A stretch of 64,000 nt of DNA, taken from the NCBI GenBank assembly GCA_004431415.1, contig QPMI01000533.1:1-64000 (forward strand). Reading direction: 5' to 3'. The DNA is from Cyanophora paradoxa CCMP329 (lineage: Eukaryota > Plantae > Glaucophyta). This document shows, in pieces, positions 57,353 to 64,000 of this stretch; position 1 is the stretch's first letter; the number at the start of each line of letters is the position of its first letter. The notes beneath the pieces were generated by a model. The model was not told the origin of the DNA and ran no database searches. It saw only the letters and a program-made list of their open reading frames with translations. The position numbers were made by a program, and so were the translations under genes.

Positions 57353-57477
57353 CGGGCCGGGCTGAGGCTGCTGAGCCGCTGCTCCGCTCCGCGGGTATGA
57401 TTTGCGAGCGCTTCACGCCCCCTACCCCCCTCCCCCCCCCAAAAGCGCGCGCACCCGGCCCGCGGATCAGCGGATCG
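57353..57477. promoter_or_regulatory. 125-bp divergent (bidirectional) promoter region
   Basis: Spacing between the ATGs of the EEP gene (-) and the AK-NADK gene (+). Confidence 0.6.
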
Positions 57478-60400
57478 ATGGCGGCGTTCTGTACGGGACT
57501 TCCTGGACTGGCGTTGACGCCCGGCCGCGTTGTCGTTCCGCGGCCCTCGGTCGATCTGGATCGGCCACGGCCGCTGAGCCGTATCCCGAAGGTACCGCCC
57601 CCGGCTCGCGACGCCGTGCCGACGTCTGATCTCTCCGCATTCGCGTCGTTTATCCTTGCCTACAGTTCCATGGCCTTCGCGCCGCCTCCAAACTTGAGGG
57701 CCTCGGCCAGCGGCGGTTCCAGCACAGCAGCCAGCAGCGCTTCGTACGTTCCTGCGGCTTCGAGCATGCCAGCGTCGTCCGTGCAATGGCAGTGGGCCCC
57801 GACGGCGTCGACGACGAGGCGTTGCAGGCGATGGAAGGGAAGAAGTGCACGCCGGGGATTCGCGTGCTTCTGATCGGCCCGCCCGGCTGCGGCAAGGGCA
57901 CGCAGGCGGAGAACCTGGCCCGCAAGTACGGCCTCATCCACGTCCACCCGGGAACGCTCCTCAAAGAGAACATCGAGCGCGCTTCGACCCTCGGCAAGAC
58001 CGCCGAGCCGTGCGCGGCGCCGCCGCCCTGGCCGCCGCCCGCAGCCGACGCGGTGGTCGCAGGTACGTGCAGCGCGGCGAGCTCGTGCCCGACGACATCG
58101 TCATCCAAATGGTCCAGAAGCGTCTCGCGGAGGCCGACTGCAAGCGGAACGGCTGGGTCCTCGACAGCTTCCCGGCGACGCTCAAGCAGGCGGAGAACCT
58201 CGAGGCGGATGTCTGCATCGTCTTCAACATGGGTGACGACAAGGCGCGCGCTGGCCCCGCTCCCCAACGCCCCGCCCCGCCCCGCTCCGCCACTGATCGC
58301 CACCCTCAGGTCATGGAACGCGTCCTGGGGCGGCGGTACGACCCGTTGACCGGCCGAGTGTACCACAAGGTTTTCAACAAGCCCGAGTTCGAGGAGGTAC
58401 CGCAATTCCGCGCCCGGATCCGAAGTAACGCCAGTGACGCCGTACCCAGGTCTCCCTCCGCCTGGTCTCCCACACGGACGACACGCCCGAGAAGACCGCC
58501 ACCAAGCTCGCCGCGTGCGTACCCCCTGCCCCCCCCCCCCACCCCGCGCGGCCCTGATCCGGTACCCCCTCCCAGGTACCGGGCCACGTCCGCGGAGGTT
58601 CTGCAGGCCCTGAAGGACAAGGTCGTCGTGGCCGGGCAGGCGAGCCCCGTACCCCTCCCAGATATTATTAGAGATAGATCGCAGGACTGCTCCCCACGCC
58701 CCTCCTCTCCCCTCCCCCTGCTTCCAACCGCGTTCGCCGTTCATCTGAGCTTCCCCCTCCCCTCTCTCTTAGGTCGTCGAGGTTGAAGCGGACCGCCCGA
58801 TCGAGGAGGTCCTGACGCAGGTGCGAAGCCTCGCCCGAGGCCTCGGGCCGGCCGGGATCGCATGCCCCCTCCTCCTCCTCCGCGCCTCTCTGACGAGGGA
58901 CGCCTTCTTTCGCAGGTCGAGCGCGTCATCTTGGAGGTTACGCCAGAGGGCATCTCCGGTCCGCCCCGCCCCGCCCCTCCCCAGCCCGACCCGACCCGCC
59001 CCCGCAAGAGAATCTAGCCGCGCGGCCCGCCCCGCCCCGCCCGTTCCGCTCGCTTGGCTAGGCACAGCGCAAGCAGTCTTCCGCCCCGCCCTGCCCCTCG
59101 CCCGCCCCCGCAAGAGAGTCTGGCCGCCCGTCCCTCCCCCTCGCCCCGCCTGTCCGGCGGCGCCCACCCGTCTCCTCCCCGCCCTCCTCCTCCTCCTCGT
59201 CCCCTGACTCGCCCCCGCCGCAGCGCCGTGCCCGCAAGCCTTCCCCAAATCGGACATCTTCCTCATCAAGTCCAACGGCTTCATCTGCGAGCGCGAGCAG
59301 GCGAGTCGGCCGGCCAGCCGGCCTGGGCCCGAAGAAAGAGGGAGAGGGGGATAGATAGTTGGTTAGGGGGGCCGCAGAGCTTGCTTGGCCCCAAGCAAGG
59401 GGGGCCGGCCCCCTGTCCTACGATTCCAGGCAGGCCGATTCCGTCTCACGCCGTACCCCCGGGCAGGTCGACGACGCCAAGATCCAGTTCAAGGCCCCCG
59501 CCACCGAGCAGGCCCGCCCGCCCTCCTCCCGCCCCGCCCCGCCCCGCTCCGCTGTGTTGTGCCCTGTCTATGTTCCTCCTCCTCCTCCTAGGCCCGCCCC
59601 GCCCTCCTCCTCCCGCCGCGCCCCGCTCCGCTTGCTTGTGCTCTATCTATGTTTTGCTGACGGCTTTGGGGCGGGCGCAGGTGCACCTGACGTGGAAGGG
59701 ACGCCCCCGCAACGTCCTCGTCCTCAAGAAGGTGCGTTGGGAGGGGGGTAGGGGGACAGGGGCGGGGCTTGGAACAAGAGGACTACACCTAGGATCAGGA
59801 AACGAGGGACTTGGACTAGAAAGGGCCCGACTAGAGAGGGCGCCACTACGGCGCCCTCGCGCGCCCCGCGCCCCGCGCCTCGCGCCTCCCCGCCCGCGCC
59901 CCGCGCCTCCCGCCCCGCGCTAACGAGCGGGGGGTGCTCAGCGGGGCCCCGAGCTGGCGCCCATCCTCGACGAGGTGGCCAAGTACCTCGAGGAGGTCCG
60001 ACCCCGCGCCCGCGCCCCCGACCCCGCCCCCAGACCACTAGAGAAAGATGGAGGATGGATCAGAACCCGTCCGCCCCGAGCCTTGTGGCCTGTCTGGACC
60101 ACTGGGGCCTGTCTAGACCACTCGACCATCGGCCGCCTAGTCGCGCCCTCGCCCGAGCGCGCCCGCGCCTGCGCCCCCGCCCGAGCCTCGGGGCCTGTCT
60201 ATACCACTCGACCATCCGTCCGCCATGTCGCGCCCGCGCCCGAGCGCGCCCGCGCCCCGCCCCCGCCCGCGCTCGCCCGGCTTCACGTAGCGAGGGCGCT
60301 CGAGCAGCCGCTCCCGCCCTCGGCGGCCTAGCTCGCTAGACCATCATTCCGCCTGTCTAGATCGCGGGACCATCAGCCTGCCCAGTCTCTGACCTCCTCC

Positions 60401-62920
60401 TTCGTCTTCTCGCTCGCTCGCCCGCGCAGGAGGAGAACCTGAACGTCTTCGTTGAGCCGGCGGTCGCACGCGAGCTCTCGCACCTCACCCCCTACGCCCA
60501 GTGTGCGTGTAGCCCCCTCCCCTCCTCCCTCCCACCCCTTCTCCCACCCACCACCCCATCCCCGATCCCCCTCCCCCGATCCCCCCCCCCCCCCCCCCCC
60601 CCCCTCCCACCCCGCCCATCCCCCTTCCTCCTCCGACGCCCCCCGCAGCGCAGGAGAAGGAGCTGGACGGGATGATCGACTTCGTCGTGTGCCTCGGCGG
60701 CGACGGCCTCATCCTCCACGTCTCCCAGGTGCGCCCCGCCCTAGATACCCTATTCCATAGGCCGTTCCTCCCATAGCATAGGCCTCATCCTCCACGTCTC
60801 CCAGGTGATCGAATCCCAATCTAGGCCCAGCACAGCGCAGCGCAGCGATCGATCCTCTGCCCGCCCGCCCCCGTCTCCCCGCCCGCCCCCGACTCGCCCT
60901 GACTCGCCCCCGCCCCCGCCCGCCCGGCAGCTGTTCAAGAACGCGGTGCCGCCGGTGCTCTCCTTCGCCCTCGGCTCCCTCGGCTTCCTCACCATGTTCG
61001 GTGCGTCTGGAGGGGGTTGGATTGGAGGGGGGTTTGGAGGGAGGGGCTTTGCCGCTGGGGCGTCTGGAGGGGGGACGCATAGAGTCCACAATCGCCCGCC
61101 CGCCCGAGGATTGAATTGGATTGGAGGGGGCGGTGGGAGGCCGGGGCGGAGGGGGGCTTGGAGAGGGGAGGCTTGGACGCGGGGGCGGGGCCCGGGAAGC
61201 TTCGCCTGCTTGCTCGCTAAGGGATAAGAAGGCCCATGAGAGCGTTCGGCCCCCTCTCAAAGCTTCCCGAGGCAGAGCCCGCCGGGCTCTGCCCGGCTCC
61301 GCCCGCGCCTGACAGGCGCGCCCGCGCCCAGCCGCGTCTGCCGCGGTCTGATCCTTTAATACAAGACCTTTTAATACGTCTGCCGCGCCGTTTATACCTC
61401 TAATCCAAGACCTTTCACATCAAGCGTATGCATTAACGCGGCCCGCGCGCCCCGCGCGCGCGCAGACATCAAGGACTACAAGGAGCGGATCCGGCAGGTC
61501 ATCGAGGGCGACTTCGGCCTCTCCCTCCGCATGCGCCTCTTCTGCCAGGTCCGCCCGCCCTCCCTCCCCTCCTCGCCCCAGATCCAAATGGCCTCGTGCA
61601 TAGAACCCGCTGCCCCTCGCCCCTCCCCACTTCGCTTTCCTTCCCCCAGTCTCTTACCGCTCGCTTTCTCGGCCGCAGCTGTACCGCGACGGGCAGCCCG
61701 TCCCCGGGAAGAATATCCTTCAGCCCGCTTGCCCCCGCCCCCTCCTCCTTCTCCGCTCTATGTACCCCCTCCTTGACCCTCCTCCGCACCCTTCAGCGCG
61801 CTGAACGAGGTGGTGATCGACCGCGGCTCGTCGCCCTTCCTCTGCAACCTCCTCACCTTCGTGGACGGCCAGTTCGTCACCACCGTCCAGGCCGACGGGT
61901 GCGCCGAGGGCGCTCAGATCAGATCAGATCAGATCCAGCGTCTTCTCTTCGGCTAGCTTCTTTTTTAGGAACTCTTCCTGTGGAAACCTTCTATGCGCGG
62001 CTCTTTCTATAGAAACGTCCCTGGCCTAGCCGAGGCGCTAGAGCTTGAGCTAGCCTCACTTTATGGCGAGCTTGACTTGGAGGGCAGCTTGACTTAGAGG
62101 GCAGCGCGCCATCGCTAGAGCCTGCCCCTGGGCTAGCCGTCGCACTCTCTCTCTCTCTCTCTCTCCGCGCTCCCCGTCTCCGCCGCGCCTCGCCCGCTGA
62201 CCTCGCCCCCGCCAGCTTGATCCTGGCCACGCCCACCGGCTCCACGGCCTACTCCATGTCGGCCGGCGGCGCCATGCTCCACCCCAGGTACCTCCGTACC
62301 CCTAGGGGAGGGTACGGCGTTGTTTGACGGGCGTGCGTGCGCACCCCCCGCAGCGTCCCCGCGATCCTCTTCACCCCGCTGTGCCCCCACTCGCTCTCCT
62401 TCCGCCCCGCCGTCTTCCCCGACTCGGCCGTCATCGAAATCCGGGTACCCCCCTCCCGCGAACCCGGTTTCGCGTACCCCGGCCGACAGGGGGACGCCCC
62501 TCCCGCAGGTCCCGGAGGGCAGCCGCGCGCTCGCGTGGGCGTCCTTCGACGGGAAGCAGCGCACGAAGCTTAACCGGGGGGAGTCCATCGTCGTCCGGAT
62601 GTACGAGTACCCCATCCCGAGTTCGCGAATCCCGTACCCCCCACCTCCACAATTTCGAGTACCCTGACGGACCCCGTGCCGGCGCGCGCAGCGGTGAACA
62701 AGACGGACAACACGAGCGACTGGTTCGACTCGCTGGCTCGCTGCCTCAACTGGAACGAGCGCGTGGGGCAGAAGCCGCTCTCGGGCATCGCCAACGCGGG
62801 CCCCCCGCAGCCCTCCATCAAGCCCGGGGTACGCTGCGCTTCGTTCGCGCTCCTTCGAGGGGTACTGACGGCCTTCTTCGTTCGCAGGGCCTCCCCGCGG
62901 CGGCCGCCGCCGAGAAGTGA
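57478..62920 (+). CDS. NADK: Plastid-targeted fusion: degenerate adenylate kinase domain plus NADK2-type NAD kinase, about 23 exons
   Basis: Leader [10 protein letters not shown]..; AK motifs [33 protein letters not shown]; NADK motifs [61 protein letters not shown]; in-frame linker across intron 58959-59223. Confidence 0.9.
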
Positions 62921-63514: not shown

Positions 63515-64000
63515 TCATTGCCAGAAGCGGGTGAAGAGGTCGAGGGCCGCTAAGGACGGTGATGCGGTGCGCATACAGATCGCCGTCGACCGCCACTCGT
63601 ACGCCCGGGACACGCCCGTGAAGAAGCAGAGCCAGGCGGGGACCGAGATGGTGTGGAAGAGCTGGTGCGAGTGCAGCCAGATGTCGAACTTGCCGGGCCA
63701 GAAGCGCTCCGGGAACCGCATCGCGAAGAGCGCCGTGCCGGTCGCGTACAGCAGCGCCGAGTAGAGGTACCACGGGAGCGCGCGCGTCGTCTCCTCGTGG
63801 CTGAACCCGTACGCGACGATCTTGTGGAAGTAAGGGGCCGCAAAGGCCGAGCCCAGCGTCAGGAAGACCGTCGCGCGGATCCACCGGTACTCGGGCCGGT
63901 CGAAGCGGTCGCAGCTGCAGGCGGCGAGGATGCCCAGCGCCGCGCCCAGGTACAGCAGGGTGTAGAACAGCCGCAGGTTCTCGTCGCAGTAGAACTCATA
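63515..64000 (-). CDS. PAQR / adiponectin receptor-like (haemolysin III family) membrane protein, 3' part only
   Basis: RFPERFWPGKFDIWLHSHQLFH motif preceded by hydrophobic helices; runs off the window end. Confidence 0.88.
   Translation of the reverse strand, partial: YEFYCDENLRLFYTLLYLGAALGILAACSCDRFDRPEYRWIRATVFLTLGSAFAAPYFHKIVAYGFSHEETTRALPWYLYSALLYATGTALFAMRFPERFWPGKFDIWLHSHQLFHTISVPAWLCFFTGVSRAYEWRSTAICMRTASPSLAALDLFTRFWQ

Follow-up and report, generated by a model that had tools for sequence, protein, structure and literature searches.

Why would a plastid NAD kinase (NADK) carry, at its N-terminus, an adenylate kinase (AK) that seems unable to catalyse? The question is raised by the locus 57478..62920 of the window, i.e. 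the whole 64,000-nucleotide stretch of Cyanophora paradoxa DNA that we analysed. A preliminary description had proposed that the gene encodes an apparently dead AK domain fused to NADK, as a candidate built-in ATP sensor. The matter is of some interest, as linear photosynthetic electron flow has NADP+ as its final acceptor. A 2019 review describes plastid NADK as light-regulated by a mechanism that is still open, and states that the role of the N-terminal extension of NADK2 is unknown (PMC6676473).

The locus corresponds to tig00021036_g17291 (exon 2 is 100% identical to the database protein P0001). The two halves belong to a single transcript: AK and NADK exons lie together on one contig of about 2.29 kb (2.25-2.29 kb) in runs X1, X2 and X6, which come from three studies. 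These are assembled contigs whose cDNA nature is shown by the splicing pattern; they start around position 57430, extend past 63000 and skip introns with GT/GC..AG ends. The GT..AG joint 58958/59224, which links AK to NADK and for which the preliminary description had called for spanning reads, is present in the three runs and was not found in the DNA-like run X17. The seven positions of the model that we checked against the X1 contig all agree. The 23-exon model starts at ATG 57478 and has its sole stop at codon 689 (62918-62920), with no Met between residues 216 and 423. The frame thus runs uninterrupted for 688 codons from the leader through the AK into the NADK, and the linker has neither a stop nor a second ATG, just as described. 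In the public model P0001 (512 aa), splicing goes wrong beyond residue 315. Homology searches were made with single exons or with P0001, and the joined 688-aa model served only for frame, stops and codon positions. Minor introns, of which this gene has a candidate (Table 1), were previously described in C. paradoxa (PMC10639083). Neither this intron nor the 74-nt one within the leader figured in the preliminary description.

Trivial explanations do not hold. A pair of neighbouring genes, or a wrongly joined model, is incompatible with the spliced contigs and with red algal genes that hold both parts in one frame in genomic DNA. Sequencing errors at the substituted codons can be discarded: the contigs agree base for base, and an earlier gene model, made independently (2015 supplement), carries these substituted residues too. 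Linkage to the upstream phosphatase-like gene showed no conservation in the four red algae examined.

Table 1. Features of the C. paradoxa AK-NADK gene (window coordinates; residue pairs are E. coli AK, then C. paradoxa)
Feature	Position	Strand	Basis
Entire coding region (688 aa in 23 exons) for transit peptide, AK-like domain and subfamily II NAD kinase	57478..62920	+	spliced contigs
Leader resembling a cyanelle transit peptide (about aa 1-78), interrupted by a 74-nt intron (57592-57665)	57478..57785	+	Phe, charge
AK-like domain of the short-LID plastid type (aa 103-308, exons 2-8)	57858..58936	+	Pfam ADK, 1ZAK, pLDDT
Intact P-loop, K13 = K115	57876..57902	+	residue comparison
AMP-site substitutions T31 to P133, R36 to K138 (T and R in most red orthologs)	57948..57965	+	residue comparison
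D84 and Q92 kept; G85 to S188, R88 to A191	58163..58189	+	residue comparison
ATP-side arginines R119, R123, R124 kept = R217, R221, R222	58319..58336	+	residue comparison
Catalytic LID arginines lost, R156 to H250 and R167 to K261; D158, D159 kept	58471..58506	+	residue comparison
265-nt GT-AG intron at the AK/NADK junction, in-frame splice	58959..59223	+	joint in X1, X2, X6
Subfamily II signature segment, exons 9-11	59224..59731	+	exon-by-exon scores
NADK GGDG motif, intact	60696..60707	+	motif check
77-nt U12-type AT-AC intron (5' ATATCCTT, branch-like TCCTTGAC)	61713..61789	+	joint inferred from contig positions
NADK NE and Gly-rich/TGSTAYS motifs, intact, exons 18-20	61790..62444	+	motif check

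The plastid location, part of the earlier claim, has two lines of evidence. The leader has a Phe at position 4 and 13 R+K for 4 D+E; a Phe near the N-terminus is a hallmark of cyanelle transit peptides (PMC4510345). The AK part of the protein was also quantified in purified cyanelles, under a 'truncated' adenylate kinase model whose entry covers this part only, at a low abundance of about 0.7 on the table's scale, compared with a mean of 14 fmol (PMC4510345 supplements). Hence, the C. paradoxa gene is real, expressed and its product plastid-located.

The N-terminal half is an AK in its fold. Its match to Pfam ADK (PF00406; 1.5e-34) is above the cut-off, with CORE, NMP and LID regions and a P-loop, and it is predicted as a complete AK fold (pLDDT 93). 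The maize chloroplast AK (1ZAK) is both its best match by fold (TM 0.80) and its best single-domain match by sequence (150 bits). Both have a short LID, but 1ZAK is a free enzyme with all five catalytic arginines. In E. coli numbering, the Cyanophora domain retains K13, G14, T15, D84, Q92, R119, R123, D158 and D159 and carries the changes T31P, R36K, G85S, R88A, R156H and R167K. Only R123 is left among the catalytic arginines R36, R88, R123, R156 and R167, and only Q92 among the AMP-specificity residues T31, G85 and Q92, which are mostly kept in red orthologs. The motifs quoted in the preliminary description, an intact P-loop and GRR amid substituted AK motifs, were all recovered (K115, R221-R222, P133, K138, S188, A191, H250, K261).

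These losses extend well beyond Cyanophora. Among the matches listed, 52 other non-redundant proteins have the AK+NADK architecture. All those assigned to an organism come from red algae (Cyanidioschyzon, Cyanidium, Galdieria, Porphyridium, Rhodosorus, Hildenbrandia, Gracilaria, Eucheuma) and the remainder cluster with them. One is CmNADK2 (BAM83146.1) of C. merolae, whose NADK-AK gene is one uninterrupted frame. Atlas searches gave no AK-NADK fusion cluster, and no ortholog from another glaucophyte was among the matches listed, a weak negative given the limited length and candidate range. R156 is gone from the 52 red fusions and from Cyanophora (53/53), and R167 persists in only 3 of the 52, whereas the 119 free AKs used as controls all keep R156, R167 and the other compared residues. 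The survey suggested in the preliminary description thus finds the loss of R156 conserved across all 53 fusions and that of R167 across about 50 (0/119 in free AKs for either), and the crippled AK with its P-loop retained is a property of the group. Red fusions otherwise keep the ligand-contacting residues from Cyanidiales to Florideophyceae: K13 in 38/40, D84 in 50/50, R88 in 48/49, Q92 in 49/49, R119 in 52/52, R123 in 51/52, and R36 in most. Since loss of R156 and R167 is common to the fusions and the AMP site of red algae is intact, the shared lesion is the catalytic LID pair. Only the Cyanophora domain lacks the AMP site, red orthologs retaining R36, G85, R88 and Q92. A specifically ATP-sensing role, as originally put forward, therefore does not follow; a sensor of ATP/ADP(/AMP) is the better description. 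Red algal subfamily II NADKs (CmNADK2, the Galdieria NADK) share domain order, signature segment and R156 loss with Cyanophora, which has a shorter linker. Cyanophora and red AK domains have degenerated differently, a counterpoint to reading them all as sensors.

Within the short-LID subfamily as a whole, R156 is found in 42/50 and R167 in 45/50 domains, so dead-looking AK domains recur in multi-AK proteins. The vertebrate axonemal AK8 (PDB 9FQR) is a flagellar protein with tandem AK domains. Like the Cyanophora domain, both its short-LID domains lack R156 and have a Lys at R167, yet according to a review (PMC10056885) both are active, which is another counterpoint to a sensor and the main caution here. 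Derivation of the fused domain from AK8, considered on account of these shared substitutions, is disfavoured, as 1ZAK outscores AK8 per domain for Cyanophora (150 against 112 bits) and for one red domain; from this score comparison, we prefer convergence.

What would such substitutions do to an AK? In E. coli, R88A, R123A, R156K and R167A leave less than 1% activity with an ATP KM of 52-120 uM, for 71 uM as reference, and R36A leaves 17%. Single changes at R156 or R167 cost more than 99% of activity, and more than 99.9% in AK1, whereas human AK1 R44A and R97A keep around 20% (PMC8297476). Loss of LID arginines with retention of the ATP site is therefore a pattern expected to stop catalysis and spare binding. 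Judging from these residues, the AK domain of the fusions is very probably catalytically dead or severely impaired, and it probably still binds nucleotide. The E. coli enzyme binds ADP (9 uM) more tightly than ATP (53 uM) (PMC8297476), and by analogy ADP, as well as ATP, should be accepted by an intact P-loop site. The red algal domains probably also bind AMP or ADP at the second site.

The C-terminal half belongs to the NAD kinase family by exon-wise Pfam matches and motifs. The segment encoded by exons 9-11 also occurs in NADK2 of red algae and plants but is weak or missing in NADKs of animals and fungi, which places the C. paradoxa kinase in subfamily II. Summed exon scores agree (about 890-1040 for red and plant NADK2 against 706-855 for other eukaryotes), and the likeness to plant NADK2 noted at the outset is thus confirmed. 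The protein is a cyanelle NAD kinase of subfamily II, with NAD+ phosphorylation as its predicted activity. NADKs already take ATP as a substrate, so that an extra sensor is not obviously needed, and this too is a counterpoint. Chloroplast NADK2 of plants (Arabidopsis At1g21640 type) resembles the Cyanophora protein in its subfamily II kinase, signature segment, plastid location and a dead-looking N-terminal phosphate-handling domain. Yet, that domain is PTP-like (PF22741) in plants and AK-like in Cyanophora. Its catalytic Cys is replaced by Ser in 7/7 plant sequences checked, so in both branches of subfamily II this position is apparently occupied by a phosphate-handling enzyme that is dead.

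The caveat that the fusion might be known already was justified. AK+NADK is among the subfamily II architectures given by Li et al. 2014, who called ADK an additional 'catalytic' domain, placed the origin of the fusions later than the glaucophyte split and excluded one incomplete Cyanophora fragment, CpNADK2, which may or may not be the present gene (PMC4072752). In the literature covered, mostly outside subscription journals, no other paper on this combination came up; we met with no reference to the pseudo-enzyme state or to a glaucophyte fusion, and with nothing relevant on precedents for AK-like sensors. The pseudo-enzyme reading was presented as the novel part, and within that scope it apparently is. 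Hence, the AK-NADK fusion is known; the conserved catalytic lesion and the glaucophyte gene are apparently new.

The best explanation, to which we give about an even chance, is that cyanelle NADK is adjusted by adenylates through an AK-derived, nucleotide-binding pseudo-enzyme module, on the indirect grounds of the residues retained and of a predicted docking. Having lost most or all phosphotransfer and kept ATP/ADP binding, as the enzymology suggests, the module would open and close with nucleotide while packed on the kinase, and this movement would match NADP+ synthesis to stromal energy charge, e.g. at dark-light transitions. Packing is suggested by an AlphaFold prediction for a red ortholog (592 aa) whose linker is disordered: since its pTM of 0.84 exceeds a computed ceiling of about 0.6 for undocked domains, the AK domain may dock on the kinase via a defined interface, although this is one value for a red algal monomer of a normally oligomeric enzyme.

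A fixed docking would also suit a dead AK domain that serves in oligomer assembly, stability or tethering, with bound nucleotide as a constant cofactor instead of a signal. Red fusions, unlike free AKs, conserve around ten positions at the surface or in the fold, as such a structural module might require, and Bangiales put an unrelated acidic extension in its place. But red algae retain both nucleotide sites (R36, R88, Q92, R119, R123), more than a scaffold needs, and we regard this as rather improbable. Still less probable is a domain with low but useful activity that recycles the ADP made by NADK (2 ADP to ATP + AMP) near the active site. The reported activity of AK8 despite similar substitutions and the residual activity of the AK1 mutants speak for it, and the C. 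paradoxa AK part is the only AMP-kinase-annotated protein that we found in the 2015 cyanelle proteome tables. Yet, four of the five arginines are gone from Cyanophora, as are T31 and G85, single LID changes are already nearly fatal in true AKs, and the protein is scarce in cyanelles.

The ligand could also be another adenine compound (NADPH, NADP+ or a dinucleoside polyphosphate) bound for feedback control. AKs do bind di-adenosine ligands such as Ap5A, the second site has been remodelled in a lineage-specific way, and feedback by pyridine nucleotides is common among NADKs; the canonical ATP-site residues make this very unlikely all the same. Finally, the domain might be the decaying, functionless remnant of a once active fusion. 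Its long branch in Cyanophora, its loss in Bangiales and its erosion in some Galdieria models would all be understandable then, but 41 of 219 AK-domain columns are at least 90% conserved among 12 red proteins of several classes, and every fusion examined retains the full fold and the reading frame. We consider decay the least probable of these readings. The adenylate-binding regulatory module is the one we favour.

When did the fusion arise? The fused red AK domains form one clade (support 100/99). In a tree without plant plastid AKs, the Cyanophora domain falls elsewhere, on a long branch and with no strong support; one clade of glaucophyte and red fused domains is not rejected (AU test, p = 0.46). 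Both one fusion and independent fusions in the two lineages are compatible with this outcome. In Bangiales (Porphyra, Pyropia) the orthologous kinase has no AK domain and is nested among fused red proteins, which points to a secondary loss; the domain is thus dispensable there, and this, too, counts against a sensor. The glaucophyte fusion challenges the 2014 model of a fusion after the glaucophyte split. One might speculate, and we hold it possible though doubtful, that the ancestral plastid NADK of Archaeplastida had an AK-derived energy-charge sensor, kept by glaucophytes and red algae, swapped for a pseudo-phosphatase in green plants and lost in Bangiales. On this view, the N-terminal extension of plastid NADKs would serve as a general socket for regulation, its AK version being a new class of ATP/ADP/AMP-sensing allosteric module gating the supply of NADP+ to photosynthesis.

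The annotation of red algal fusions as 'adenylate kinase' is probably misleading. How light switches plastid NADK and what its extension does have been named as open questions (PMC6676473). To these, a conserved dead AK domain brings a concrete hypothesis at the level of ligands and residues, and one that can be tested in C. merolae. This alga is genetically tractable. The plastid NADK of Cyanophora and of most red algae apparently carries a switched-off AK domain, through which the supply of NADP+ may be tuned to the energy state of the chloroplast.

Plant NADK2 carries another enzyme-like N-terminal domain in the same subfamily, and this domain is probably a pseudo-phosphatase, since in its PTP-like fold serine replaces the catalytic cysteine (about aa 340-365) in all seven sequences compared (P0332, P0335, P0339, P0349, P0366, P0371 and P0377). 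The loss of catalytic residues must be interpreted with care for the adenylate kinase (AK) domain of the fused NAD kinases. In AK8 (PDB 9FQR, chain G8), the equivalent of R156 (E. coli AK numbering) is missing and lysine stands at R167 in both AK domains. Yet this protein is reported to be active (review PMC10056885).

In the Bangiales (Porphyra and Pyropia), the place of the AK domain in NADK2 is taken by an acidic, helical-looking extension (P0525, P0184, P0191). Seven of the 193 positions conserved among the fused kinases are altered in all four Bangiales sequences, which represent a single loss event. These seven kinase positions are candidate interface residues. A further subfamily II NADK lacking the fusion, L002 (P0347, 442 aa), comes from a eukaryote transcriptome and is placed as sister of the red clade.

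Four of the 22 introns of the Cyanophora gene have GC donors, which are probably part of the reason for its mis-annotation. Another intron is of the U12 type, has the only such 5' site detected in the window by pattern scan, and is absent from the public gene model.

Features of the window
Feature	Position	Strand	Basis
Glyoxylate/hydroxypyruvate reductase-like gene, start	about 54380 downward	minus	translations, by eye
EEP/CCR4-like neighbour gene	57352 to about 55611	minus	transcript contigs, motifs, weak Pfam match
GC donors of NADK-gene introns	58244, 58640, 59301, 59512	plus	
U12-type AT-AC intron	61713-61789	plus	pattern scan
Adiponectin-receptor/PAQR-type membrane protein-like gene, 3' end	about 63550-64000	minus	translation, by eye only

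The NADK gene and its EEP/CCR4-like neighbour are divergent, lying head-to-head with 126 bp between their start codons, and the neighbour's transcript contigs extend to about 57411. The neighbour protein has a leader that includes Phe and shows EEP/CCR4-superfamily motifs, with a weak match to Pfam PF03372 (E 0.0019). It presumably resembles Arabidopsis At1g02270/At5g54130 (CCR4H/I). Linkage of NADK and CCR4-like genes was not found in any of the four red algae examined. Because a relative, CCR4C, is the chloroplast NADP(H) phosphatase (PMC12557515), one lead is that a single promoter may serve genes for both the synthesis and the breakdown of NADP in Cyanophora.
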